The notes under the pieces are model-generated. The model was not told where the DNA came from and did not search any database. It worked only from the letters and a program-made list of their open reading frames with translations. 64,000 bases of DNA from Hyaloraphidium curvatum SAG 235-1 (Eukaryota > Fungi > Monoblepharomycota), in the NCBI GenBank assembly GCA_025558095.1, contig JAIVFI010000001.1, forward strand, positions 868,001 through 932,000. Direction: 5' to 3'. Positions 1 to 28,810 of this stretch are shown here, one piece after another; position 1 is the stretch's first letter; each line of letters starts with the position of its first letter. Made by a program: the position numbers and the translations under genes.

Positions 1-3000
1 GGCCCAACCGGCGATCCTTTCGCAGGGCATCGTCTCTGGCATGCTGGATTACTTCCACAAGTCCGGCCGCTTAAATCTCCTGGATCCGGCGGGAATCGAT
101 CTGTTTTCGACGATCTGTGTGCTCTTTTTCGTCGTGGATCAGCGACCTCGCATCCGAGCCCAGGTGCTTGCCATGCTGGAACGCCTGTATGCTCCCTCGG
201 TCGGCACAGGCTTAGTGGATCGGATACTCCTTCCCCATGTGTTTGCTCGACTCCCGGAGGAAACGGATCCTCAAATTGCGGCAGGCTGTCTGCAGTTGCT
301 GGCCGCGGCTTTGGGCGACGGGTTTGGCGGGAGCGCGACGGACGCCCATTTCCATTCTTTCGTGGGACTTCTCTTCGATTGCGCTTCGTCCTCCTCCCCT
401 GTTGGGGCACAGGCCGCGGCGGTGCTTGCCGACACTTTCGTCGCTTGCTTTCAAGGCCGGCAACCGGCTCGTTTCGCCCCGACCATATTCTTGGAGCTCG
501 TCAAGTTTCTGGGAAGGACTGATGCGAATGCAGCTGCACGCTTGGAAACGCTGAAGCTTCTTGCACAGCTGCGCGCGGACCGCCAACACAGGGTCCGCTT
601 GGAGGGACTGCGGGGGCGGCGCCTTCGAGGCGTAATGCCTGCGGCAGGGGACGATGCCTCCGCGCCGTCAGAAGGATCCATGCTCCTGTTCTCGGCAGTG
701 GTCAGTTTCCGCGAGGAGGAGGGCAGTACCAAGGGCCAGACGGTCTCGTTCGGGGATGATGGCATGCAGGACGATCTCGCTTCCGATACCACCAAAAGAC
801 AGCCGGATGGCGAGGAAGCTGTGGGCCAATCCGACGTCCTTCTCCCAGTTTCAGCCTATGTCGAGCAGCTGACTGCTCTAATGCGCGCCGAAAAGGATTG
901 GGACGTGTTCTCCGCCGTCGTTGTGCTTTTGCCGAAGCAGCTGGCGAACTTCACGCTGTTTAGGGGCTGCCGCGTATCTCTGAACGCCCTCCGTGCAGGA
1001 CTGTGCGAAAGCATCACTTCGGACCTGCTGGCGCCGCAGCTTGTTCTTGCAAAGGGTGCCAAACGGGCGGACGTGTACCTGCAGGCCTACCGCTTGCTGA
1101 CCTCGCTGATGCCGTACAAGGGTTTCTTCGCCAAAGCGGGCCTCGACGACATGGTGCTCGCGTTCCAACTTGGGCTGACGAAGTGGCCGACGACCGCCAG
1201 ACCTTGCGTCCATTCACTTCTGCAGTGTTTGCATGAGGTGCCTTCGAGCATGGTGAAGTTTCTGCCCAACACTCTCGTCAGGATGGCCCAGGTCATTTCC
1301 ACAACATCGCTTTCTGTGCACATCCTGGAGTTCCTCTCGGTCCTCGCGCGCATGCCTTCACTGTACAGCAATTTTGTGGAGGCGGACTTCAAGAGGGTGT
1401 TTGGAATCGCTTTGCACTACATTCAGCATTCTTCGGCCGTAACGAGCGCTGGTCAAGTGTCGGCGCCCAACAGTTACGCTTTGGGCCAGTTTGTCATCTA
1501 CCTGTCATACCACGTCGTCACGGTGTGGTTCATGAACCTGCCAGTTCGGGAACGTCGACGTTATGTTCCCTTCATCGTGCACTATCTCGCGCTCGCCAAC
1601 GGCCCCGCACCTGCTCTGGACGAGAGGATCGAGGTCCTGGTGGACATGCTCCTGCGATACGCGTATTCGAACTCCCAGGCCAAACCGCAGCGCGGCCTGC
1701 TCGACGAGCTGTTGTTTGGCGAGCTTTCGGCGACCAGCCAAGTGATTTCCAGGTCGTGGGCGCAAGGTTAGCACTTGTGTGTGAATCCGTTTCCGCGCTC
1801 TCTGACGTTCTTCCAAAGGCGGAAGCCTCGTCACCGCTCGGACGATCCGGTCCCTCGGATGGTGCGAACTTACCGTACGGCGCCCCTCCGGCACCGCCAA
1901 ATTGCTCATTAGGTTGGAGAACCGGCTCAAAGGCGAAGAAGCGGACTTTGCGAGGGCGCTCTTCCCCATGGCACATTTGGGATTCGAGACGGTGGACGAC
2001 CTGGCTTTGATCTCCAAGGCAGTCCAGAGCACCTCTGGGCACCCGCAACAGGAAAGTGCGGTGGGCGGCAAGGAAACGAACCAGCAGTATGCCAAGGGTC
2101 ATGCACGGACCATATCGTCGAGATCGGACCCGGACGCTGCCAAGGGCTCTCTGGCTGTGCCCGATAGCTCGCTGAGGAGGGCGAAATCCATCAACGACAC
2201 CGCAGTTGGTAACGCTGGCGATGCATCGGCTGGCCCAAGCGAACCCGCGCGCGCTGGAGCTGAAGCTAAGGAGGCGTCCGCCGACCCCGACCCGTCGTCC
2301 CTCTTATCGACGCTGAAGGAGACCTTGATTTCGGACGGTGGGACCGGGGAGAGTGATAGGACGAACCACACGTCCACGCCCTATCCCTTCAAGGACGACA
2401 ACCTGCTGGATCCCGGATTCGTGATGTCGCAGCTCAGCACCTATCCGGATCTGTCCGGCCGAGCGGAAGACAGCACGCGTGCGCTGCCGGACGACGACGG
2501 CACGACCCGTGCCATAGCGGTACTCGACCGCATACCCGTGGTCGATTTCCACAAGATTGGTGTCGTGTACCTCGGACCCGGTCAGACCACGGAGGGCGAG
2601 ATCCTCCGCAACCGGCGAGGGTCGGCCGCCTACCACCGTTTCCTCGCAGGTCTAGGCTCGTTCAACCGCCTGCGGGACCTAAAGGACGTCTACACGGGAG
2701 GCCTGGACATTTCGCAGGATTTGGATGGCGAGTACGGCCTTTTCTTCGAGGATGAGGGCTCCCAGATCGCTTTCCACGTCACCACGCTCATGCCAAACAC
2801 CGACGGGGACGAGTCGTGCACGTCCAAGAAGCGGCACATTGGAAACGACTACGTGCTGATCGTGTTCAACGAATCGGGCGTCGAGTACGAGTTCCGGACG
2901 ATCCCGTCGCAGTTCAACTTTGTCAACTTTGTCGTGGCTCCCATCCTGGGGGAGAGCGGCCCGGCGCCTGGCCGCGGTTCGGACGTGCCCCATCTGTTCA

Positions 3001-3323
3001 GCGTGACAATGCAGCGGCGGGAGGACATGCCCGATTTTGGGCCACTGGCCGACACGAAAGTAGTCTCGTCAGCCGCCCTCTCCCCGCTCGTTCGACAACT
3101 GGCGACGCACGCGGACACTTTCGCGCAGATCTTTTACCTGAACTCGTCGGGAGTACCTGCGGATTGGATCTCCAACTGGCGCGAGCGATTGCGGCAGATC
3201 AAGCGCGCGCGGGAGAGGGCGATGAAGGTCACAGTGGGCGGTGGAGTTGGCGGGGGAGGCGAAGACGAGGGGCGGCAGAAGGCCGTGTTGGATCACGCGC
3301 TAGACTTCACCCGCTACGTCTAA
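1..3323 (+). CDS. TSC2: Tuberin (TSC2), 5'-truncated by window edge; C-terminal Rap/Ran-GAP domain
   Basis: ORFs 41-1771 and 1902-3323 are joined by a GT-AG intron at 1767-1818, restoring GWCELTVRRPSG. GAP motifs HKIGVVY, FHVTTLMP and KKRHIGNDYVLIVFNESG are present; the protein ends LDFTRYV. Confidence 0.93.
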
Positions 3324-13156: not shown

Positions 13157-15822
13157 ATGAATCCTCCGAATCAGGGGCCGCCGGGCCCGCCGCCGGGCAC
13201 GAATCCTGCGCCGGCGGGCCCGCCCGCGCTGCCGTCGTTCCAGTCGATCGCGGCGTCGGCGAACCCGCCGCGTCCGCTGATGCAGCCGCCGTTCCAGGGC
13301 GGCCGGCCGCAAATGCCGCTCGGCCCGATGGGCGGCTTCCCGCAGTACGGCATGCCGCGGCCCGCGCCGATCGCCGCGAAGCCGCAGTTCGACTACGCGC
13401 GCCCGATGCCCGCCGGCCCGCCGCAACCGCAGTCCCCGGCGCCGCCCGCACGGCCCGCCTACATGCCGCCGCAGCAGCAGGCCGCGCAGCCAGCGCCCCG
13501 CATCATGCTGCCCGCCCCGCGGCCGCCGGGATACGCGCCGCCGTACGGCCAGGCCATGGCGCCGGACTACTACGGCCGGCCGCCCCCTTCGCAGCCCGCT
13601 CCGCACTGGGGACAGCCTCCGGCCCAGCAGCAGTACCAGCAGCCACCGCCCGCGGCGTCTGCTCCGACGCCGCAGGCTTCGCAGGCGCCTCCTCATTCAG
13701 CCGCCGCGTCGGCCCCCTCCGCTCCGGCCCCGCAGCCCGAGAATCCCCGCCCGCCCGAACCTGCGCAGGGCTATGCCCCTGCTTCGGACGTCCCGGTGAA
13801 GAAGGAGGCGCAGACCGCGCCGGAACAGTCGCCGGGCGGCTCCGTTGCTTCGCCCCACCCGGACTCGGACGAGGGCAAACCCAGGTCGAGGAAGCGGCCG
13901 CGGGAAGGCGAGACCGGCGGAAGCTTCCTGGGCGGGCGCTCAAAGGACGGCGACGGCAACGATGGAGGGAAGGGCGGCGAAGGGTCTCGCCGTCGCAAGG
14001 GTCTCCCGATTCCCGTCAAGAACGATCCGAAGCTGGAGAACGTTCCCGAAGGAGTGGCTGTCATCGATTTCGGTAGAGACATTGTGGCGAAGGCTGGGAT
14101 GACGTTCTTACGCGACCGCCACCGCAGGGACCCTTCTTTACGTTCCTCCCGCCCCGGATCTCTCCAACGCCGGCGATCTCCGCCTCAACACGATCCCACG
14201 TTTCATCTCTTCGCAATTGTACTCGGTGGTTCGCGTGGCTGTGCCTGCCGAGTTCCTGACCGTGCGTGGGCCTGCGGTGCGGAAAAAGTGCATTTGGGGG
14301 ACGGAAATCTACACGGATGATTCGGACCCGCTGGCCGGTGGGGCACGCTGTGCACGAAGCGCTGGTCGATCTGACCCACGTACCTCTGTAAAGCCGCGAT
14401 CCACGCAGGGTGGTACAGGCCCCCGGATGCCCCGCCGGTCACTGTCGCTCCCGCAGACCCAGAAAACGACGAGGGCAAGGCGTCGCAGGCTGCGGCGCCC
14501 GCTGATACCGCCGCGCGTGATAAAGAAGCGGGATCCGTGGCTGGACCCGACAAGGAGCTTGAAAACGAGGAAAGCAAGCTTGGCGTCGAAGCGGAATCCG
14601 GAGACAAGGCTGGCAGCGGCGAAGATAAGGACATGGCAGACGGCGATGCGGGGTCCAAAGCCCAGACCTCGTATTCTATGCCGGCGAAACCCGCCGATCA
14701 GGCCACCACGGCGCTTGAGCCGTCAGAGGAAACCCCTGGCGGCACGTGGAAGGCTCCGCCACCTCGCGTCCCGTTTTCCGGGGCGATCGACGAATCGACG
14801 AAGCTGCCGGACCACGATCTGCTCATCACGTTGCGCATCCTGCCCCAGCTGGTGCGCTACACCGGCTCCCTGCGTTGCGGCCTCGTTTCCCGCGGCTGGG
14901 GCGCGGGCCACGACGGGAACTCGATAAGGGTCATCGAATGCGAGAAGATAGCGTGCGGGGATGCGGTGAAGATGGCCAAGCACAGCATGCGCAAGGCTGC
15001 TCCCGTTTTGGGGGCAAGTCACGACGATTCGGACGGCTATTTGATGGTGATGGAACAGCGCGAAGCCTCTGGGGACCTGCAGACTTTGTGAGTCGCAGTC
15101 GGCCCTCGCCATTTGCATACCACTGACTCCTCGTTCAGCATCAACTATTCCCCGGCGACACTCAACTTTTGGCCCCCGTTCCTCCTGCGGATCATGTACC
15201 AGCAGGTCGACAACCAGAATCCCCCGTCACCCCCGGCGGACCCCTCACAGGCGGAGAGGTTGAAGAAGTGGGAGGCTGAGTGGAAGACGCTCGTGGGCGA
15301 TTGGGAGGGTGTGAGGCTGGCCGACATGTGGCAACGTGATTGGCGCTGTTGGCGCGTTCGGATTTGCGGCAAGAACCAAACGAGTCTTTTGGAGTCTGTT
15401 GCTTCTGCCGAACCTGGGATGGAAAAGCTGGAAGAGTGCGTGACCTTTCTTCCTCGAACGGTTCTCTTCGGCTAACTGGTGATTGCAGGCCCCGGACTGT
15501 CTATTATTCCTTGAGGCTAGTGAAGCCTGCCCCTAACGCAGTGACGTCCAACTCCGACCGCTACGTTTTGACCAACACCACTACCGGGGACGTTGTCGCA
15601 ACCAATCTCCGCCCGGACGAAGTTTTTTTTGACGAGGAGGGACTGGTGCTTCGGCGCAGGGCAGCAGGAGCGCCACTGCCTGACAATGGTCATCTTGATT
15701 CGTATACCACGGGTGATGATGCTCCGAACGGGGATGGCGCAGTTGGGAGGGCAAAGGCACCCGTGCTGGGACCTGTTGAGCTTCCCACGATGATACCTGT
15801 TGTGAGGGTTAGGTGGAGTTAG
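13157..15822 (+). CDS. RXT3: Rxt3-domain (Rpd3L histone deacetylase complex) protein with Pro/Gln-rich N-terminus
   Basis: [15 protein letters not shown]|AAIHAG and [40 protein letters not shown]; introns e.g. 14338-14393. The 3' exons are less certain. Confidence 0.8.
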
Positions 15823-16527
15823 GGAGGGCCCGCGTTGTTGGGTTGACAATGTGGATATTGATGAGCAGAACATTTACTGGATGCTGAGAAGCACGCAAAG
15901 CCCCAACCCATGTAGTGCACCACACACAATCTACACAACATGGCCACCTAATCTGTAGCAATTAAAATCACCCTCCAAGAGACCCCCAATCGCGCTCCGG
16001 AAAACTGTAGATTCTGAGCCTTTGCACTCTATGGCCCTTGCACATGACTAGGCCATCCCCCAAGGCCTGTCCTGACACCCCGGCATTCCCAATGATCTTG
16101 AGCTTGAAGTGGCTGGAAGACAACCACCCAACTGGAAGAAGTGGCTGGAAGACAAGCATCCAACTGGAAGAAATGCTGTAAAATGCCACAAAAAGTGAAG
16201 GATGCAAAAGGAGCAGAGGAACTGCAGTTTGAATTATTTCCTGATGGAAAATGCTTGCTTGCACATGGAAGTGAAGCATGATGCGCCCCACAGAGTGAAA
16301 ATCCCTGAGAAGACAGGCAAAGGAAAGCCAGACAAGCCGGCAGAAGTGAACATGTGCGAGACAGTCTGGGATGAAAGACAGATCAGCTGAACCACGAGCT
16401 TTAGGCTTGCCTCACAGAGCTGACCCACCCACAACACCTCAGAGGTGATGGGATGGACCACAATGCGACCATCAATGCAGAAAGTAGTGTACGACGTGGT
16501 GGTAAAATCATCTTTGACCGGGTGTGA

Positions 16528-16603
16528 CACAAGATTCTCCACAGTCTCCTTGGGCCATGAGAAAGTGTCCTTCTCCCACATCTCCCTCCCATCTTCGCCG
16601 CCA
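16528..16603 (-). mobile_element. Short internal fragment of the LINE family
   Basis: Reverse complement is nearly identical to ~24060-24134 (GGEDGREMWEKDTFSWPKETVENLV). Confidence 0.85.
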
Positions 16604-16675
16604 AGACCGGAACATGAAGCAGGCGATGTCTTGCAAACGGGCAAGAAAGCAGCGTGAGGGCAATAGGGAGAGGAG

Positions 16676-16851
16676 AGAGACAGGTGCAGATGAGGCAGGT
16701 GATGCTCCTGGTGTTTGTTGTGTTATTCTCCCCTGAGTGACCGCCTCCCTAGGTAATTGCTAGCCAGAAACCATCGTCCCATCCAAGTCCAGTTGCAATG
16801 CCAAGTTCAACTCCAACTCGTCCCGAGGTTCCAAACACATCCATGCATCCC
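16676..16851 (+). repeat. Left arm of a ~177-bp inverted repeat pair
   Basis: Aligns by eye (about 85% identity) to the reverse complement of 28383-28559. Confidence 0.9.
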
Positions 16852-17194
16852 TGTGAGGACTTGACTTAGGGTAGTTGGAGCACTAGCGGGCAGCCAAGAG
16901 GCCATGTGCAAAAACCCTTTATATCATCGATTCTCACTATAATTACCCTTCGCCACCTTCAGCCTTGCTTGGTCCTGCCACGCCCTCTGGCAGGGCCCTG
17001 CCAGGATCTGCCCCCGATCCTGACAATCCCCAGGAACATGAGCCGACGAAGTTCGTGCCTGAATAGTATCATGATTTTCTGGAGGTCTTGCATGCGTGGG
17101 ACTTGGAGAAGCTTCCCCCTCACCAGCCGGGAGTGGATTTGGGGATCAATTTGCAGACAGTTGATCTCTCTCAACTTGACAACAAGCTCTTCAG

Positions 17195-17335
17195 CTTTTG
17201 GCACCACTTTGTCCCTTGCTGCTTACACGTCAAACTTCGGATGAAAGCCGTAGTTTGCAAAGAATACGTCATTTTTGTTGATGCATGGACGGAATTGATG
17301 TAGGTAATTCCGCTAGAGGCAAGAGCTCTCCAGCT
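17195..17335 (-). mobile_element. Ty3/Gypsy integrase C-terminal half (frameshifted)
   Basis: Reads W..ELLPLAE / YINSVHASTKMT / FFANYGFHPKFD across frameshifts, the conserved post-catalytic integrase motif. Confidence 0.8.
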
Positions 17336-17603
17336 TAGAATAGTGTTGGTGACCCGGACCTGCCCCTGGCTTGGCCGCTGTTACACCATGAGTTTGCTGC
17401 TAATTGCAAAGTTCATCGTCGTCGTGTGTCTTTTTCATTTTCCCAGTTTTCCTGTCCTTCATGGACTTTGAGATGAAGCTGGCAATGGAGTTGAAGGCCT
17501 TCTCCTTCTGCCGCCTCGCTTTGATCGTGGGCTCGAACTCCTTGATGCTAAGAGCCCAGAGCCAGGTCTCCATGTTCCACTCGCGGCCTAGTGCTTCCAA
17601 TCT

Positions 17604-18838
17604 CGTGTAGTCAAATTCCAAACACCCCTGCCCACCCCGCTGCTCGCGCGCGCTCTTTGGGCCGCGAGCAGCGGAGCAGCAGTGTCTGGGGTCGTCGTGC
17701 TTTAGGGCTCCTGCCCTCTAGCGCGGCGCCGGCGCGGTGTGCGGGTTGGGCACCCGGGGACGCGCAGACGGGACCGGCTGCAAAACCGGTGCCCCAAGCG
17801 TGGCATTCGACGCCGCAAAAGCGCTTGAGGAACCCATTGGCCTCAAGAGGCTTGCGCTGGCCCTGCAGGGCGGCTAGGCTCTTCTCCGGGGGGCGCCGCG
17901 TCTGTTAGTGGGCAAACAACGCGTCGCGTGCTGAAGACGCGACCGCGGGCCTACGACAGCGTGTGCCTCACGTGTGCCGCTTGAAAAACGTGCCGTAGGA
18001 CCGCGTGGCTCTCTGGCTCTGGGCGCGGAAACATGACACTTAACGGCGGCGCACGTCAAACATGGGACGCGTTGCTCGCGTGGACGCACCCCGCCAAACA
18101 ACAAGCGACCAACCGCGTGCGCTTTCTGGTGCGAAAGGGCGCGAATGGAGCAGGCAGCTGCGCGGCGCATTGGCTCTAAACGCTGCTGACTGCCCGCCGG
18201 TGCGCCTCTTCAAGGAGGGGCCGCGGCGCAAACAACGACATATCCGTGGATTCCGGTCTCTGGACACGTAAGCGGCCAACACAGGGATGGAGGCAGGAGC
18301 CCTACGGCTTCTTTGCTCGCCTGCACGGCGACTCCAAAGCGCACGGGGATGGAGGCAGGAGTCCTACGGCTCTTTGCTCGCCTACACGGCGACTCCAAAA
18401 CACACGGGGATGGAGGCAGGAGTCCTACGGCTCTTTGCTCGCCTACACGGCGACTCCAAGACACACGGGGAATGGAGGCAGGAGCCCTACGGCTCTTTGC
18501 TCGCCTACACGGCGAATCCAGCACCTTTTGACCAGAACCAACACTGAACTTTTCAGGATCTAGATGAAGCTGCATGCCTGACATTGTACCCGCTGGATGA
18601 GAAGGTCCCAAAACCCAAACCGAAACCAAACTGCTCATTCTTTCTGGAAGGTTTTTCACCTTCGTGGGAAGGTTTTCCTGCCAGCAAACAACACCGGGAC
18701 TGGAGCATACTGTGGATTCAAGGGAAGGAGGAGGCAGATAGGTCGTCGACACAGCTAAACAAACCAATGGTGGTGTAATAGCGGCCAAGCCAGGGGCAGG
18801 TCCGGGTCACCAATACCATACCCATACCCATTTCCGTG
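17604..18838 (+). mobile_element. Putative non-autonomous SINE-like retroelement inserted in the LINE, flanked by 5-bp TSD AATCT
   Basis: AATCT occurs at 17599-17603 and 18839-18843, and removing the insert restores the LINE (compare 24431-24460). It ends in the LINE 3' motif (18771-18812) plus a (CCATA)-like tail and has no credible ORF. Confidence 0.6.
18280..18520 (+). repeat. Tandem repeat, 4 copies of ~61 bp
   Basis: Unit CACGGGGATGGAGGCAGGAGYCCTACGGCTCTTTGCTCGCCTACACGGCGACTCCAAAACA with few variants and no unique spacers. Confidence 0.95.
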
Positions 18839-21034
18839 AATCTAGTCTGCAGCTTCTGGCGCCGCTCCGCATTTGCTGAACAGTGAAACAGAAAGTGTTG
18901 TTCGTCTCCAATGTGCTCAGGGTCATGCTTGCACGTTCTCTGCTGCACCTCAAGTCCTTGGTGCCTGCCTGTCTCCACCTCCAGGTCGTGGGTAGAGCAC
19001 AGCAACTTTTGGACATTGACATCCCTCCGGTGCTTCTCCACCCGGATCAGGGATGGTCCGATGTGGCCAAAGGTCATGTCACACATCCTCCAAAAGTGCA
19101 GTTTGTCGTTGTCCTTGAGCCTCTGGGCATTGATCTCCCTGAACTTGCCCTTCACAAGATTCTCCACAGTCTCCTTGGGCCATGAGAAAGTGTCCTTCTC
19201 CCACATGTCTCGGAGTCCCGACAACTTTGGCGTTTCCATTCCTCCCGAAACCATGGCGATAGGCAATGGGCCGCGGGTGTCGTTACCCCGGTCGAACGGG
19301 GGATGCGCGCCACCGCTCGCAGGATCATCCGCCGGCATCCTCGCCCCCCCCACCACCCCACACGGCGGCAGCCGCTCCAAAAGAAGACGAGGTACGCACC
19401 GCGTCACAGTGGGAAGCGGCAGCGGTGAAGGTGGCAAGGGGCACGAGCAGAAGAACTAGGCAAACCCTGGCCAACATCGAAGAACCTTCCGGCACGACAC
19501 CGGGGCGCTCCGGAATCAGGCCTGTGTCGTGCTCCCGAATCACGCGTGCGGAAAGGACGGCAATTCCAGAACGGAAACAACGATCCCGGTCTCGCGTGTG
19601 GGGGAACGGGGGGGTGCAGAAATCCCTTTGCGGACGCCATGACGGTTTGGCTCTGCCCCCCACCCACTTGCCACACGCTTTTTCCCCAACCTTTTGACTC
19701 GATTTTGTACCAAAATCTATAGTCAAAAGGCATGAACGGGTTCCCATATTGGCCCACTGCCTTGACCTTTGTGTTGTAGAGCTTGAGCTGGAGGTCAGGA
19801 CTCATCCCAGGCTGCTCCCTGATGTCACGGAGCCAGAGCCCATAAGCATCGCAGCGTTCATCTTGGCCTCTCTGCCATGCACATGGTCCTTGCTCCGGCC
19901 GGTTGAGGTCAGCTGATACCCCAGAAGCTTGAAGCTGTCAACCCTCTTCAGCTCCTGGTCCCTGTACATGAGCTTTACACGGTGAGGTATCTTCCTGGCC
20001 ATCCACTCTGTCTTGCTGACGTTGATCTCCAGCCCATTGGCACTGGCATATGCAGACAGAAGATCCAGCTGCATCTTGGCATCCTTCACCGTCTTCGAGA
20101 TCAAAGTGGTGTCGTCTGCAAAGAACAGAGCTAGCAAGCTGACCATCCTCTCCTGATCCTCTTCCTCCTCAGACACCATGCCCAGATCCATCCCTTTTGC
20201 ACCATTGGCCTCCATGAAAGCAGTGATGTCGTTGATGAACAAGATGAAGAACAGCGACGAGAGAGGGTCCCCCTGACTCCGGTCAGGAACTTGATGAAGT
20301 CTGACTTGGTCCCGTCTTCATCCCGGAGCCGTCCCCACACGCGCCCGAACGCCATCTCGAACATGTCAACAACCTGTTTGGGTACTCCCATCTCCTCCAG
20401 CTTCTGCCATAACCTGGGGCGCTCCACCGTGTCAAAAGCCTTTGTGAAATCTACAAACACCATGATCAGCTTCTCCTTGCGTGCCTTGGCCAGGGAGAAG
20501 AGTGCCTCGGCAAGGAGTACTGCATGAAGGGTCGATCTCCGTGCACGGAATCCAAACTGCGAGCCTTCCAGCAGCTTGTTGCACTCAGCCCAGGGAGCTA
20601 GCCGAGCGTTCCAGACCAGGGAGAAGACCTTCTCCAGCGTCCTCTCTATGCTGATGCCCCGGTAGTTGCCAGCCACGTTCTTGGGCCCCTTCTTGTGCAG
20701 CATCACCAGCAGTGTCTGGCCCCGCCAATCTTGCATGTCGACGCCATTGAGCACAACAGCTTGCTTCAGCACAGTGGTCCCGTACTTGACGAACTCGAGC
20801 CTGATCCCATCCTTATCCGCTGCCCTGCCGTTAGGAGCCTTTGGGGTGCAGCAGGTTCCCAGGAGGCGTGATTGTGGCCTTGGGGAGCGGTGGGAACGTG
20901 AGCCTGGGGTCTTCCTCGATGTTGGTCACGTATTCGGCGCTGGCCACCATCTCCATGTGGCGTACCAGCTCCGCAAAGGGCACGGGGTTGCCCTTCCGCC
21001 TTGCATAAGTCTTCCCAAGCAGTTGGTAGTATTC

Positions 21035-22595
21035 GAGCTGCTGGCGCAGGAAGTGGAAGGTGTGGAGCACCTGCGTCCGGGATTCGTCGGCGTAGATTTC
21101 GACGGAGTCGCCGACGGAGTTGGCGGGCCAGAACGTGAGCACGGCCTGCGGTTGGAAACGGTTCTCGGCGATGATGCGCTCAAACAGCTTCTTCGCGTCG
21201 GCGAAGAGCTTGGTGGCCTCGGCGCTGACGACCTCGTCGGTGAGGATCTCGGGGTAGCGACCGTGGAGCTCCCACGCGCTGAAGAACGGGCCCCAGTCGA
21301 TGAACTCGCGGTCGAGCAACTCGCGCACGGACACGTCTCTGAAAATGCGCGTGCCCAAAAACTCGGGACGCGGGATGTCGACGGTGGTCCAGTCGGATTT
21401 GAATGCGCGGGCGCGGGCGTCGGCAAGCGGGAGCAGCGGGCGGGTGGAGCGACGGTTGGCGAAGTCGGCGCGGGATTTTTCCTGCTTTGCGCGGACGTCA
21501 GCGACGTAGGCGGGCTTGTTGTCCGTGCTGAGGAGCTGCGAGACGACGCCGATGACGCGCGAGGCGTCGAGCACGTGGATGACGGGCTCGGAGTAGTGTG
21601 GCGTGATCTTCACGGCGTTGTGCGCGGCGGAGGTGGTGGCGCCGCCGATGAGCAGAGGGATCTTGAAACCCTGGCGCTCCATCTCCTTCGCGACGTGGAC
21701 CATCTCGTCGAGGGACGGCGTGATCAGGCCGGAGAGGCCGATGACGTCGACGTTTCTCTCCTTGGCGGCGGCGAGGATTTTTTCGCACGGCACCATCACG
21801 CCGAGGTCGATGACCTCGTAGTTATTACAGGCGAGGACGACTCCGACGATGTTCTTGCCGATGTTGTGAACGTCGCCCTTGACGGTGGCCATGATGATCT
21901 TGCCCTGGGCCTTGGCGGTGCCGCCGGAGGCAATGAGGGCGGCTTTCTCGGCCTCCATGAAGGGCTGGAGGTAGGCGACGGCCTTCTTCATCACGCGGGC
22001 GGATTTCACGACCTGCGGAAGAAACATTTTGCCCGCGCCGAAGAGGTCGCCGACGACGCGCATGCCGTCCATGAGCGGGCCTTCGATGATGGCGAGCGGC
22101 TTGCCATATTTCTGGCGGGCTTCCTCGGTGTCGGTGTCGATCCAGGCGTCGATGCCTTTGACGAGGGCGTGCGAGAGGCGTTCCTCGACGGTGAGGCTTC
22201 GCCAAGCCTCAGCAGTTGAAGGTTGAGAGTTGAGAGTTGAGGGTTGGCCGGAGTGGGCGGCTTTGAGTTTTTCGCCGTGCTCGACGAGGCGCTCGGTGGC
22301 GTCGGGGCGGCGGTTGAGGAGGACGTCCTCGACGAGGACGAGCAGCTCCTTGTCCACCTCCTCGTAGACCTCGAGCATGGCGGGGTTGACGATGCCCATG
22401 TCCATGCCGGCGCGGATGGCGTGGTAGAGGAATGCGGCGTGCATGGCCTCGCGCACGGGGTTGTTGCCGCGGAAGCTGAAGGAGACGTTGGAGACGCCGC
22501 CGGAGACTTTGGCGTGCGGGAGGTTTTGTTTTATCCAGCACGTGGCCTCGATGAAATCGACGGCGTAGTTGTTGTGCTCCTCGATGCCGGTGCCG

Positions 22596-22636
<41 letters not shown>

Positions 22637-23143
22637 GAAGCCGACCTGGTCCACGAGGAGGCGGTAGGCGCGTTCGCAGATGCGGATTTTCTCGGCGTAG
22701 GAGGCGGCCTGGCCGTTTTCGTCGAAGGCCATGACGACGACGGCGGCGCCGTAGCGGAGGATGGTGCGGGGGCAGTCGACGAACGCCTCTTCGCCCTCCT
22801 TGAGCGAAATGGAGTTGACGATGCCCTTGCCCTGAAGGCATTTCAGGCCGGCCTCGATGACCTCCCACTTCGAGGAGTCCACCATGACGGGGACCTTGGC
22901 GATCTCGGGCTCGGAGGCGATGAGCTGGAGGAAGCGCGACATGGCAGCGACGCCGTCGATGAGGCCGTCGTCCATGCAGACGTCGATGACGTTGGAACCG
23001 TTGTCGACCTGCTGGCGGGCAACGGAGACGGCTTCCTCGTAGGCGCCCGCTTTGACGAGTTTGGCGAACTTGGGCGAGCCAGCGACGTTGGTGCGTTCGC
23101 CGACCATGAGGAAGCTGCCGAGCTGCTGGGTGAACGGCAGGCC
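21035..23143 (-). pseudogene. metH: Bacterial-type cobalamin-dependent methionine synthase fragment (pterin-binding, cap, B12-binding and start of reactivation domain), inserted in frame in the LINE ORF
   Basis: 703 codons, intronless, nearly all third positions G/C. Motifs [38 protein letters not shown](N)[28 protein letters not shown]. Lacks the homocysteine-binding domain and most of the AdoMet domain. Confidence 0.95.
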
Positions 23144-23700
23144 CTTAGGCTCTCGCCTGAAGAATGGTTCCAGCAGCTCAGAGTTCTTGTGCTCCGTGAT
23201 CTTCCGCATCTTCTTCTCCAGCTTCTTCCTCTCCTTCTCCAGCTCTCGCGCCTTCCCTTGGTACTCCTTCTTCCACTCCTCCTTCTCCATGAGGGATCGC
23301 AGCTCAAGAAGGCTTGACAGCTTGCGGTCGATCTTGGTCCTCTCCGCCGAATCCGCAAAGCCTTTCAGGAACTTATCAGCCTCCTCATGTACGCTGACCT
23401 CGTCGTACTTCCTCTTTGCCACCTTGTTCACCGCCGCCATGATCTGTATCAGCTGATTGCACTTGTCCGAGCCAGCTTCCATCTGCTCGTACTCCTGCAT
23501 AGACTCTTTCACCCACGCCTTGTCCCAGAGATTTTGCATGATCACGAGGAAGTAGAAGTCGCAGGGCACGTGTTTGCCACGTGACTTGTTCTCCTTTGCG
23601 GTTGGTCGCTTGACGTTGACCTCGATGGTCATGCTCAGCGCCATATGAGCTGAGGTGACGACCCGCCAACCCTCCTTCACAAAGGCGAGCTCGGTCATCA

Positions 23701-24051
23701 ATCTCAATGAAATCCATTGTAGAACCACCTGAGTCTGCTGAGGGCCGAACATGCATTCTCACAGTTGTAGACAGACTCTCCAAACAAGTGCACTTTCCGG
23801 ACTTCAAGAAGCTGCCAGATTCGGAACAAAGGGCAAAGAACTTCCTGAAGCACGTTTTCAAAGAGCATTCCCGGATGAGATCATTTCGGCAGAGGGACCC
23901 AGTTCTTGTCAAAGTTCTGGAACCGTCTCACGGAGCTGTGTGACGTGAAGGTGAAAATGTCAACATCTTTTCACCCACAAACAGATGGAATTGTCAACCA
24001 GACTCTAGAGCAGTACCTCAGAGCGTTTGTGAATCGCGATCAGGACAGCTG
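23701..24051 (+). mobile_element. Ty3/Gypsy integrase core, N-terminal half (frameshifted)
   Basis: [66 protein letters not shown]. Confidence 0.88.
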
Positions 24052-24720
24052 TATACTATGGCGGCGAAGATGGGAGGGAGATGTGGGAGAAGGACACTTT
24101 CTCATGGCCTAAGGAGACTGTGGAGAATCTTGTGAAGGGCAAGTTCAGGGAGATCAATGCCCAGAGGCTCAAGGACAACGACAAACTGCACTATTGGAGG
24201 ATGTGTGACATGACCTTTGGCCACATCGGACCATCCCTGATCCGGGTGGAGAAGCACCGGAGGGATGTCCAAAAGTTGCTGTGCTCTACCCACGACCTGG
24301 AGGTGGAGACAGGCAGGCACCAAGGACTTGCTATTGAGGTGCAGCAGAGAACGTGCAAGCATGACCCTGAGCACATTGGAGACGAACAACACTTTCTGTT
24401 TCACTGTTCAGCAAATGCGGAGCGGCGCCAGAAGCTGCAGACTAGATTGGAAGCACTAGGCCGCGAGTGGAACATGGAGACCTGGCTCTGGGCTCTCAGC
24501 ATCAAGGAGTTCGAGCCCACAATCAAAGCGAGGCGGCAGAAGGAGAAGGCCCTCAACTCCATTGCCAGCTTCATCTCAAAGTCCATGAAGGACAGGAAAA
24601 CTGGGAAAATGAAAAAGACACACGACGACGATGAACTTTGCAATTAGCAGCAAACTCATGGTGTAACAGCGGCCAAGCCAGGGGCAGGTCCGGGTCACCA
24701 ATACTATTCTATTCTATTCT
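24050..24720 (+). mobile_element. 5'-truncated LINE copy (C-terminal ORF region, 3' UTR, (ATTCT)n tail)
   Basis: ORF 24081-24647 is nearly identical to the reverse complement of 18839-19206 plus 17336-17603; tail CTATTCTATTCTATTCT at ~24703-24720. Confidence 0.92.
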
Positions 24721-25382
24721 AAGCCAGGCCTAGCGCTTTAACCCGCTGCACAAGTGGTTCAATCTCACAGGACTCGGAAGGCCCGAAGTAGAGTTAGTTG
24801 TAGCCGGGGTTTGACCTGGAGATTCGCTTGAGGGAGACTGTCTCCCGAAGGGGGACATCTCAGAAGGATCAGACTTGATGGATTCAGACCCCGCCGAAGA
24901 CAAATTCCGCACGGCAAGGACGAATGTAAACACTGACGAACTGTGGTGATTGATGACTACTTGGCAGTACATTTGGTGGCCTTTTCTATCATGGGAAACC
25001 TGATCCGGATCAGGCCCCTGCGGTTACGATGAACGACTATTTCCCCACCAAATGCAAAACGTAAATACAGAAAGATGACCCGGACCTCTGCATGCATGCC
25101 CCCACCCAAAGAACCACTGCCCCTGCGCATCATTTCCTTGTCATCAGCTTCCGGACCTACTTCTGCATGTAACAGACTGCCACTTGTAGAAGTTGACTGC
25201 ATCTGATACTGACCACTATTGCATCTTTGCCCAAACCTGCTCGGCTGCTCATGGACTGCTGATGGTGTAACAGAGGCCAAGCCAGGGGCAGTCATTGCCA
25301 GCCCTACACAGCATTCACCACGACATGGTGCATTGGGTAATGGCCGTACTCCAGGCTAGGGCAGATTGACTCTGGGCCGCAG

Positions 25383-28017
25383 TTGGGTCCTGACCCTTCG
25401 GTGGAGGAGCTCATAGCCTACATCAACCATCCTTCAAGGATCCTGGACATTGATCTGGAGGAAAAATGCCTGAAGCTTCTAAAGGCCATGACAAAAAGGA
25501 AGAACTGCAACAAGGAGCAAGCACGATCCTGCTACCTTTGGGGCAAACGCATCCTGGCACTTCATCTGGCGGTTTTGCAGGGCAAACCAACCCCCGTGGG
25601 GACGGGTATGTGTGTGCTGGGCGGGGGGGGGGGGGGGGGCACTGGAAAGTCGTTTGTGGATGAGGTGACATTGATGCTTGCACAAGCATTGGGCAGAGGC
25701 GAATGAATGCGTGCAGCTGCCTACACTGGATCGGCCGCTTCTGGGTTGCAACAGCTGACCCTGCATTGTACCTGCTCTACAAGGAGCTCAAGATCGAGGC
25801 ACTGAAGGGTGCTGGAACTGGGCTGCCTTCCTGAGGGAACTACTTGTGTACTATGGTGGAGAGGAGGGGAGGGAGATGTGGGAGAAGGACACTTTTTCAT
25901 GGGCCAAGGAGACTGTGGAGAATCTTGTGAAGAACAAGTCTAGGGAGATCAATGCATGCCCAGAAGCTCAAGGACAACGACAAGCTGCACATCTGGAGGA
26001 TGTGTGACATGACCTTTGGTCACATTGCACCGTCGCTGATCCGGGTGATGGAGAAGCACCGGAGGGACGTCCAGAAGCTGCTCTGCTCTACCCACGATCT
26101 GGAGGTGGAAACAGGCAGGCACCAAGGACTTGCTATTGAGGTGCAGCAGAGAACGTGCAAGCATGACCCTGAGCACATTGGAGATGAACAACATTTTCTG
26201 TTCCACTGTTCAGAAAATGCAGAGCGGCGCCAGAAGCTGCAGACCAGACTGGAAGCACTGGGCCACGAGTGGAACATGGAGACCTGGCTCTGGGCTCTCA
26301 GCATCAAGGAGTTCGAGCCCACGATCAAAGTGAGGCGGCAAAAGGAGACGGCCCTCAACTCCATTGCCAGCTTCATCTCAAAGTCCATGAAGGACAGAAA
26401 ACGGGGAAAATGAAAAAGATGCACGACGACAAAATTCAAATTAGCAGCAAACTGATGGTGTAACAGCAGCCAAGCCAGGGGCAGGTCCGGGTCACCAATA
26501 CTATTCTACTCATGGCAAGAAAAGCACCCTGCATGGTTTCCTTATGCTGTTGGTCCTGGAGAACAATGACAAAACAACGGAGCAATTCAAAAAGAGCTTG
26601 CGGCACCTCGAGGAGCACAAGGATGCTCTGCGTGCAGAGCTGTGCGACGTGTGGTTCCTGAGCCTTGATGAGATGGGAATGTGCGGACTGCGCATGATGG
26701 TGCTGCTGGACCACGGTCTGAAGGTTGCCAAACACCCTTAATATCCCGAGGCGGCAACCCTTGATGATGTTCCTGGATTTCGGTGGCATTGACATCAAGT
26801 TCTCTGGGTTCTTTTTCCAGCTTGCTCCGGTCCAGGACAGTGGGCTCTATTGCCGCACCAAACTTTCGGATGACTTGCTTGCTGTGCGCACGGTTTGGGA
26901 ACACTATGTTACCAAGGCGGTCGAGCTGGTCATCAATCACCGCACCATTGGCCGGCTTGCGGAAATTCTTCTTGCCATCCGCAGTGGCCAAGCAACCATG
27001 CGCAATATTCTGGACTTGCAGGCACGGTGCATTGGGCTGGCAACGTGCCCGATGGGGCATCCCCGTGCCAGCCATGCCATCAAACTGACTGACCCCGAGT
27101 GGATGAATGCCGTGGTGATTACCCTGAGCAACCTGGCCAAGGAGGCGTTCAACATGGATGCTGCCGTTGCTTACGCTTTGCGTACCGGCAAAACCCTCCA
27201 CCTAATCCAGGCGGTTGACAGCCCCACCAAGCCAAGGAAATCCAAAACAAAACCCAATCCACAGCCGAGCCGTGCTATGAGCGCTCTGACATCTGCAGAC
27301 AAGAAGCAGCTGCTTGCCTTGCCGGACAGCAGCTTCAAGTACAGGTCCGGTTACCTTCCCTGGCTTGAGGGCATGCCGGCCTTCTTCCGGTCGAACCTTG
27401 CCGTCAGTGCTGGAATATCCAATGGGACACTGGGAAAGGCGGGCCCCATCCACTATGCAGTGCCTTTGGACGCCAGCCGCTGGGTATACGACACTCGGTA
27501 TCCCGATTTGGATGTACGGGTGGTGCCGCCTCCAGATGTGGCCATGGTGTCCATCCCCAACCCTCCCAGGCCTTTCAAGTTGTCGAGCAACATTGGGTGG
27601 AATGAGGTGCCTGTTTATCCGACGACGCAAAGCAAACGGGTTGCGCTGCCCCATGAAGGAAGCCAACGGAAGAAGCACCGGGCCATCTCGAGGCCCCAGT
27701 TGCACGTGAGCCCGGGATGGGCCATGACTGCGCACTTTGCCCAAGGACACACACTGGATAAAGTGTGCCTAGACTTTTCCTTGGACGGTACCTGTGGGAC
27801 ATGGTCCATCCTGCAATTCCTGTACGTCATGCTGTCCCGTGCACGGAGTCTGGATGACGTTGTCTTGACGGGGATGCTCAATGGCAAGGTTGTGGTGGCC
27901 AAGCTGTTGGGCGGATTCAGCGAGGACATACTGGCCGAGATGGAACGGCTGAGGAAACTGGGGAGGCAGACCCAGGTGGCACAATCGGTGTTTTTGGCAA
28001 GGATGGAGGGCATGTGA
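25383..28017 (+). pseudogene. PIF1-family SF1 helicase pseudogene, probably Helitron-derived, interrupted by a LINE
   Basis: Walker A GGGGTGKS; AAYTGSAAS..TLH; motif II LSLDEMGM; motif III FGGIDIKFSGFFFQLAPV; motifs V/VI WAMTAHFAQGHTLDKV and YVMLSRARSL. In-frame stop at ~25706 and frameshifts. Confidence 0.85.
25770..26508 (+). mobile_element. Second 5'-truncated, more diverged LINE copy inside the PIF1 gene
   Basis: ORF 25952-26413 is homologous to 24081-24647; it has the same 3' motif (26456-26497) and a CTATTCTA tail. Confidence 0.9.
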
Positions 28018-28269
28018 TTGGTACAATATTTGTGCATCGGGGTAAATTGTGGTGCCATGCATAGAATCAATCCACTTCTCCATTGATGCAACGCATTGCG
28101 CCCATGGAGTTGTCAAAAGGGACCAGCGGGGGAAGCTTGCTTCCCTTGAGCTCTACGTCACCAGCAGTATCTGGCCCCATGCCAGTCTTCCATGTTGACG
28201 TCATTAGAACATTGCTGAGGAGATCGACAACAGCTTGCATCAACACAGCGGACCGTACTCGACGAACTT

Positions 28270-28382
28270 GAGCCGTATCCCATCTCTTGAAATTGCCCAA
28301 TCTCCATGGCCTTGGCCCACATCTCCCTGTCCTCTGAACGCATGGCTCCTGCGTCGTTCCGTGGTACACGCTCTTGTTGTTG
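28270..28382 (-). mobile_element. Ty1/Copia pre-RT remnant
   Basis: VPRNDAGAMRSEDREMWAKAMEIGQFQEMG resembles the Copia motif P.T..EAM......W..AM..E..SL...GTW. Confidence 0.55.
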
Positions 28383-28559
28383 GGGATGGATGGATGTGTT
28401 TGGAGCCTCAGGATCGAGTTGGAGTTGATCTTGGCATTGGAGCTGGACTTGGATGGGCGGATGGCCTCTGCCTAGCAATTACCTAGGGAAGCGGTGTCTT
28501 AGAGGTAAATAACACAACAAACACCAGGAACGCCACCTGCTTCATCCGCACCTGTCTCT
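28383..28559 (-). repeat. Right arm of the ~177-bp inverted repeat pair
   Basis: Reverse complement of 16676-16851. Confidence 0.9.
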
Positions 28560-28810
28560 GGGCGCCTGTGACCAGGGGTCTTTGAGATTAAGAGTCTCAA
28601 CTGCTCTGACACGTACCTGCTACCCCTTCTGGAAGGCAATTCACGCCAAGTTCAAGGATGGCACGACACGCTTGGCTGAAGCTTCGCAAGCCCGCGCAAA
28701 CAATTGAGCTCTCCAGTGCTTGCAGCAAAGACTCCAAAATGGGGCAAGGACAAATGCTTCACTCCAGTTCATTATGAGACGAATTACAATACATTCATTC
28801 AGTTAGTGCA

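Follow-up and report, generated by a model that had tools for sequence, protein, structure and literature searches.

An early-diverging fungus carries a LINE copy whose coding region is interrupted by a fragment of the bacterial methionine synthase gene metH. This fragment was found in a 64,000-nt window (G000:C1:868001-932000), which is the whole stretch of DNA analysed here, in a genome of 32 Mb and 55 contigs. The locus raises the question of how bacterial coding sequence came to be joined, in sense and in frame, to a eukaryotic retrotransposon, and whether the transposon itself took part in the transfer. The initial annotation of the window ascribed the fragment to horizontal acquisition by the retroelement, either through double template switching of its reverse transcriptase (RT) onto a bacterial transcript or through end-joining capture of DNA.

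Structure of the chimeric reading frame

The fragment occupies the middle of a minus-strand open reading frame (ORF) in which LINE linker sequence leads into MetH and MetH leads back into LINE linker. The ORF, its parts, and the surrounding repeats are as follows.

15800 to 28800, no strand: CpG-depleted island of nested repeats (LINE fragments and other repeats), CpG o/e 0.57-0.69, with LINE pieces mapped
20831 to 23752, minus strand: chimeric ORF of 973 aa, comprising LINE linker (aa 1 to ~203), the bacterial MetH fragment, and a 67-aa LINE linker
23142 to 23695, minus strand: LINE part upstream of the insert, with the end of the endonuclease region and a coiled-coil linker; 91-94% to paralogs by BLAST; reference positions 1125-1675
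21033 to 23141, minus strand: inserted metH fragment of Opitutaceae type, 2109 bp or 703 codons, matching residues 403-1105 of a bacterial MetH of 1298 aa
22385 to 23101, minus strand: complete pterin-binding (methyl-tetrahydrofolate) domain, Pfam PF00809 positions 1-244 of 244, E 2.5e-62, ORF aa 218-456
21968 to 22189, minus strand: B12-binding cap domain (B12-binding_2), Pfam PF02607, E 4.3e-25, ORF aa 522-595
21623 to 21904, minus strand: B12-binding Rossmann domain, Pfam PF02310, E 1.8e-21, ORF aa 617-710
21032 to 21310, minus strand: AdoMet activation domain Met_synt_B12, first third only, PF02965 positions 6-98 of 273, E 5.5e-31, ORF aa 815-907
19732 to 21032, minus strand: LINE part downstream of the insert, with linker and reverse-transcriptase domain, frameshifted; reference positions 1677-3025; many paralogs at 89-98%

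The 973-aa ORF reads as quoted in the initial annotation, with the fragment in frame and in the sense direction. The source annotation has a gene model of 799 aa (P0001) that is entirely contained in this ORF, whose stop results from a ~35-bp deletion and a frameshift relative to the paralogs. The insert had been placed at 21035-23143, a range of the correct length that was counted in codon phase; the true limits are 21033-23141.

Both ends of the insert fall inside metH domains. The pterin- and B12-binding modules are kept, as had been proposed, and the AdoMet activation domain ends abruptly at the 3' junction. The N-terminal homocysteine-binding domain S-methyl_trans (PF02574) is absent from the 973-aa ORF by Pfam, and no further part of bacterial metH outside aa 403-1105 was found anywhere in the genome. 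Without the homocysteine domain and with two thirds of the activation domain missing, the predicted product cannot be a complete enzyme, in agreement with the initial annotation. The B12 motif of the insert is DVHNIG, where all bacteria, fungi, and animals compared have DVHDIG. The D, H, and G of DxHxxG are therefore retained and the conserved Asp after the His is replaced by Asn.

The flanks of the chimera align to the linker between endonuclease and RT in intact LINE paralogs. These consist of a single ORF of 1079-1111 aa encoding Exo_endo_phos_2, an APE-type endonuclease, followed by RVT_1. Directly downstream of the chimeric ORF, on the same strand, the ORFs at 20131-20772 and 19802-20242 also match RVT_1. 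The LINE has a 3' UTR of ~70 nt terminating in (TATTC)n, and more than 150 RT matches are spread over most contigs of the genome, mainly as truncated copies. The RVT_1 ORFs, the intact two-domain paralogs, the 3' UTR repeat tail, and the number of RT matches together identify the flanks as a genuine non-LTR retrotransposon, with relatives at most 42% identical in a protein search.

The copy that holds the insert is itself heavily damaged. Most of its endonuclease is missing, and its RT is frameshifted 67 codons past the insert. LINE homology ends at 23695, which marks either a 5' truncation or an interruption of the copy, and a further interruption lies at 19732. LINE copies in this island are nested within each other.

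Integration and bacterial origin of the fragment

Bacterial sequence in a fungal contig could be an artefact, produced by contaminant reads that were assembled in or by a chimeric library molecule. Parts of the sequence recur in samples from freshwater, periphyton, and soil, where Opitutaceae are common, and such bacteria could accompany a fungal culture. However, short-read contigs from another run on the same organism (X1, 2018) hold both junctions, covering 20973-21193 and 23062-23177 with 0 differences. The junction contigs extend 36-161 bases to each side, and some X1 contigs end in Illumina adapters. A further X1 contig of 1070 nt lies inside the insert and is error-free. Among the X1 contigs listed, none runs from the insert into bacterial flanks. 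The recurrence of both junctions in separate data shows that they are no product of the assembly. A chimeric molecule, in turn, would yield one junction, whereas two are present here with the LINE restored at the adjacent base.

The remainder of the assembly gives no sign of a bacterial contaminant in the form of 16S or of other metH pieces. A bacterial SSU model did produce five matches of ~1.8 kb and 559 bits, which are taken to be the 18S genes of the fungus. Metagenome contigs from freshwater, periphyton, and other sources contain only relatives of the insert. These are ~90-95% alike with many differences, and their coverage is confined to 21044-23141, stopping exactly at the insert ends. 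An artefact is thus scarcely credible, and the bacterial fragment is truly integrated inside a eukaryotic LINE copy. X1 possibly derives from the same strain as the assembly. Fixation in the species is therefore not implied, and a strain-specific or culture-acquired event is compatible with these data.

The bacterial origin claimed for the fragment is borne out at both the DNA and the protein level. Over its whole length the insert is 89.7% identical to a metH gene in a MAG (L123:4212-6315), which adjoins TonB-receptor and periplasmic-binding genes in a typical bacterial B12-uptake neighbourhood. A protein search of 5.8 billion sequences returned methionine synthases named Rariglobus, Lacunisphaera, Opitutus, Opitutaceae, and Verrucomicrobia at 87-90% identity. 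The best match among 401 sampled genomes of the bacterial family was 91% at the amino acid level. This family-wide search was used instead of a broader scan of genome contigs, in which the closest relatives were absent and the best of the matches listed reached 72-78%. In a tree of 47 rows, other bacteria and eukaryotes included, the insert is nested in Opitutaceae. The smallest supported sets that contain it have 5, 19, and 21 rows (SH-aLRT 97, 99, and 99, respectively) and are all of Opitutaceae type. These sequence comparisons place the donor within Opitutaceae (Verrucomicrobiota).

The host has a MetH of its own on contig C17, present as two long open frames that were handled separately and left unjoined. 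In the tree, these pieces fall beside chytrids within a eukaryotic MetH clade that is separate from the bacterial sequences (SH-aLRT 100). The native MetH is ~74% identical to Chytridiomycota MetH and 51-61% identical to the insert. The phylogeny therefore assigns the insert to Opitutaceae and the native gene to chytrids, and the fragment does not group with the host's own metH. A retrocopy of the host gene, the reading against which the initial annotation had set its own, is ruled out by this identity and grouping. Cobalamin use is reported for early-branching fungi (PMC8085122), with which the host's own MetH is in accord.

Two further signs of foreign origin had been put forward. The motifs described as bacterial-type are indeed common to the insert and Opitutaceae MetH; GERCN and DSSNF stand in their place in the host, in a chytrid, and in a mammal. 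The second sign, a jump in codon usage, calls for a correction. The insert has a GC of 0.64 and a GC3 of 0.89, compared with a GC3 of 0.77 in the LINE flanks; the native host MetH reaches 0.91-0.95, so high GC3 by itself is no mark of foreign origin.

The empty site and the route of capture

The LINE sequence that the initial annotation had rejoined by removing the insert exists in the genome. In at least five paralogous copies (L005, L006, L007/L020, L008, and L011) both flanks are directly joined and the site is uninterrupted, with ...CCTAAGGG followed immediately by ATACTACC... across the insertion point. Intact copies read ...RREPKGYYQLLGK... at the empty site. In L005, L006, and L011 the site is CCTAAGGGATACTACC, in L007 and L008 it is the same plus 3 nt, and its counterpart in the chimera is AAGGG[2109 bp]ATAC. 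Three copies have ...GAGCCTAAGGGATACTACCAACTG..., where the chimera has ...GAGCCTAAGGG, the insert, and ATACTACCAACTG....

By comparison with the paralogs, 0 LINE bases were lost or duplicated at insertion and no target-site duplication (TSD) surrounds the insert, in line with the earlier reading. The limits of the insert agree to the base between the paralog comparison, the bacterial gene homology, and the ends of the metagenome contigs. In five close bacterial relatives, the 5' boundary falls between GGCTCC and CTC CCC TTC, and the 3' end reads CTCGA(A/C/G). With donor bases inferred from relatives (best 91% aa), the 5' junction shows 0 nt of microhomology and the 3' junction no more than 1 nt, compared with the 1-3 nt suggested initially.

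Junctions at which the LINE continues with its very next base, nothing being lost or repeated and only 0-1 nt of microhomology being shared, are the hallmark of DNA breaks repaired by end joining. This junction anatomy favours the second option of the initial annotation, and the capture of bacterial metH DNA by end joining at a chromosome break in the LINE copy is given a probability of about 0.6. It is well established that mitochondrial DNA becomes integrated at breaks through NHEJ, the route accepted for NUMTs (PMC3798261). At this locus, a linear piece of genomic DNA internal to an Opitutaceae metH would have entered the nucleus of this osmotrophic fungus. It would have been received by a double-strand break inside a LINE copy that was already integrated and 5' truncated. 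Ligation would have been non-homologous and essentially blunt, as with NUMTs and other filler DNA, leaving a recent, single-copy, and most likely functionless capture. The substrate was presumably DNA rather than cDNA, which look alike for an intron-less bacterial gene; the repair was presumably end joining, and the fragment is presumably without function.

Sense orientation and frame at both junctions are improbable by chance, which counts against end joining. Their joint probability is 1/2 x 1/3 x 1/3 = 1/18. This value is not negligible, as the event was noticed precisely through its long ORF, and under end-joining capture the agreement would be a 1-in-18 coincidence made visible by that ORF. 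A model based on RT predicts the orientation, and a model based on selection predicts the frame.

In one form of RT capture, the LINE RT would leave its own RNA for a bacterial metH transcript during target-primed reverse transcription and then return. In another, bacterial RNA would be copied into cDNA from a primer supplied by a chromosomal break, and this cDNA would be joined in. The sense of the insert matches the LINE ORF, as expected from copying of an mRNA. The element encodes an RT, and its family looks recently active, with intact ORFs of 1079-1111 aa and 2 private differences in 871 sites of the RT part of the present copy. Template switching by LINE RTs is also known. In LINE template-switch chimeras and transductions, for instance U6-L1 chimeric retrogenes, the foreign part is found at the 5' or 3' end, following one switch, and the product has its own TSD. 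Such cases resemble the present locus in that foreign sequence is joined to a LINE in the same orientation. They differ from it in that the insert here is internal, with the LINE continuing at the adjacent base; the foreign part of known LINE template-switch chimeras is 5'-terminal. A second switch would need to hit the base next to the first with zero LINE bases lost or duplicated, and the 5' junction shows neither microhomology nor an untemplated base. The model further requires that bacterial mRNA met a LINE RNP inside the fungal cell. LINE-mediated capture would be recognised by a terminal foreign part together with a propagated chimera or a TSD of its own, and what is found is an internal insert in one copy. 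Capture by RT is accordingly considered unlikely, and the proposal of a LINE-mediated transfer route goes unsupported, as the LINE resumes at the adjacent base and the chimera is a single dead copy.

Lossless return to the original position is also typical of templated insertion, and the clean junctions would suit replicative template switching (MMBIR/FoSTeS). Here a replication end that had stalled or broken would copy 2.1 kb of bacterial DNA present in the nucleus and return to its template. Such switches normally involve at least 2 nt of microhomology each, compared with 0 and at most 1 nt at this site. A free fragment of foreign DNA also suits ligation more naturally than replication, and replicative switching is regarded as quite improbable.

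Age, function, and comparison with known insertions

The insertion is young. The CpG o/e of the insert is 1.30, compared with 1.30-1.38 in its bacterial relatives, 0.57-0.69 in the flanking repeats, and ~1.1 in host gene regions. At sites identical among five relatives, the insert has 51 private differences in 1657 (3.1%), an upper bound because changes of the unsampled donor lineage are counted in. CpG transitions are mildly enriched among these (15/51 vs. 28/193, Fisher p = 0.02), and conserved CpG positions are changed at 4.1% vs. 2.8% elsewhere. The LINE copy is young too: private changes in it, counted against the per-column majority of the paralogs, amount to 0.2% in the RT part (2/871), and to 2.3-2.7% beside the insert, a stretch sampled in few paralogs. 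The insert is present as a single copy in the genome, and no further copy of the chimera, a prospect raised by the initial annotation, was found there.

The private changes comprise 31 synonymous and 20 non-synonymous differences. Relaxed selection after transfer leaves no signal in these, as the N/S of 0.65 lies inside the range of 0.48-0.93 in bacterial lineages.

The long reading frame could itself reflect function, with the fragment co-opted as a B12/folate-binding module in an expressed fusion, or tolerated in the LINE protein and carried by retrotransposition. The 973-aa frame is unbroken, a gene model of 799 aa has been called in it, and sense and frame are kept. X1 contigs also cover the insert and both junctions and are possibly RNA, although their nature as RNA is a guess only. 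The private substitutions show no added constraint. The LINE copy is without most of its endonuclease and has its RT frameshifted 67 codons after the insert, and the metH part lacks the homocysteine domain, two thirds of the activation domain, and the universally conserved Asp of the B12 motif. As the chimera is also single-copy, a selected fusion is considered very improbable.

It is similarly doubtful, to the point of being very unlikely, that metH became part of an active LINE lineage, lying in sense and in frame so that the RT stayed translatable, and that the chimera then retrotransposed to leave this copy as a 5'-truncated daughter. If this were true, LINEs could pick up coding sequence of bacterial origin as cargo and spread it through the genome of a fungus. 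No evidence was found for a LINE moving its cargo, with the chimera being single and the copy 5' truncated and frameshifted. Additionally, LINE-cluster loci totalling 144 kb were scanned by composition, and eight short gene-like segments were flagged as possible bacterial cargo. Six open frames from these segments were tested, leaving out L025 and L038, whose longest frames are LINE-sized, and 0/6 had a Pfam family.

End-joining capture, the preferred reading, can be set against several known systems. In yeast, Ty1 cDNA or mitochondrial DNA is captured at induced breaks. Extrachromosomal nucleic acid likewise serves there as end-joining filler in a fungus, but these fillers are endogenous and the present one is foreign and bacterial. 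Bdelloid rotifers carry foreign genes in transposon-rich telomeric regions; these are many and often intact and expressed. They share with this locus the location of bacterial DNA in repeat-rich, gene-poor chromatin, whereas here one truncated fragment lies in an internal LINE island. Pestivirus polyproteins contain inserts of cellular mRNA, acquired via two polymerase template switches. These inserts are equally precise, in frame, and in sense as foreign coding sequence; however, strong selection for the in-frame product acts on them in RNA virus populations of enormous size, which sets them apart from the single dead LINE copy described here.

The closest resemblance is to NUMT, NUPT, and Wolbachia-type insertions, which are random, non-functional DNA of prokaryote type with no TSD, little microhomology, and no dedicated integration machinery (PMC3798261). 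The present insert has the same attributes as a NUMT, with no TSD, no target loss, 0-1 nt of microhomology, and an arbitrary donor fragment. It differs in its donor, an Opitutaceae bacterium of free-living type that is neither an organelle nor a known endosymbiont, and in its chytrid-like fungal host. The target is also distinct, as the fragment sits in frame in a LINE coding region within a repeat island. What has been caught here, at an early stage, is the bacterial equivalent of a NUMT in a repeat island of a fungus.

Events of this kind, in which DNA is transferred laterally by illegitimate recombination, are already known. What sets this one apart is its free-living-type donor, its early-diverging fungal host, and the preservation of junctions, empty site, and a donor lineage at ~90% identity. 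A literature search found no paper describing this insertion. Bacteria-to-fungus transfers on record mostly concern old, functional genes, which no longer reveal how integration took place. In the present case the junctions, the empty site, and the close donor lineage together point to plain end joining of random DNA into repeat-rich chromatin. The locus thereby offers direct evidence that free DNA from bacteria gets to the germ-line genome of an early-diverging fungus and becomes part of it. The case also shows that fragments which annotation pipelines would drop as contamination can be real, and cautions that fusion in frame to a transposon ORF does not by itself count as evidence of capture by the transposon.

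The repeat island that received the fragment may be a centromere. Among the neighbours of the insertion region is a SEC31-like ORF.

Clustering and amplification of the LINE

Across most contigs of the host fungus, copies of the LINE, the APE-type non-LTR retrotransposon family hosting the metH insert, are gathered into clusters, approximately one to a contig, within which insertions are nested. Examples are given below.

LINE clusters
C12, 481-494 kb: LINE cluster
C37, 304-317 kb: LINE cluster
C5, 721-730 kb: LINE cluster
C36, 172-192 kb: LINE cluster
Window 15800-28800: LINE cluster of the island containing the metH insert

The contig of the window, C1, has two such clusters, at ~391 kb and ~888 kb, the latter being that of the window. 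A distribution of this kind, with roughly one cluster per contig and nesting, is what would be expected of retrotransposon-based regional centromeres.

Within these clusters, pieces of the LINE have multiplied into tandem arrays. Recurring LINE fragments are separated by fixed spacings of ~2029, 2011 and 1239 bp (C12:481711-488140, C37:305095-313827 and C36:188078-191935). A tandem array of ~61-bp units, evident as staggered self-matches at window 18279-18520, adjoins LINE 3'-end sequence and is found in several clusters, including those of the paralogous LINE-bearing loci L007 and L020.

Possible antisense introns and other features of C1

Contigs from X1, a separate 2018 run of the same organism, omit 58 bases (window 23089-23148) and 64 bases (window 23388-23453) at the chimeric ORF; on the plus strand, both omitted stretches start with GT and finish with AG. 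Each gap is carried by one contig, with 28-30 bases on the shorter side. Tentatively, these may be small introns spliced out of an antisense transcript of the chimeric ORF, or the contigs could derive from paralogs.

Elsewhere in the repeat island, a 430-aa ORF gives weak matches to the PIF1 and UvrD_C_2 helicase domains (E 0.013-0.11) and may be a fragment of a Helitron-like or helicase-bearing element.

Window 26725-28017 (+): 430-aa ORF

C1 also carries five near-identical SSU rRNA genes, presumably 18S, of ~1.8 kb each, which are spaced 30-80 kb apart with no tight tandem array.

SSU rRNA genes on C1
34313-36120: SSU rRNA gene
81258-83065: SSU rRNA gene
112949-114756: SSU rRNA gene
180907-182714: SSU rRNA gene
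260147-261954: SSU rRNA gene

Relatives of the MetH proteins

Some Opitutaceae MetH proteins (P0031-P0034) are unusual fusions, 1640-1685 aa in length, in which PF06414, a zeta-toxin-like kinase domain, is present in addition. The native MetH of the host is 88% identical to P0133, a protein of environmental origin found in metagenome data of JGI and ENA, as against ~74% for MetH of the closest named chytrids; close relatives of the host fungus are therefore present in metagenomes.
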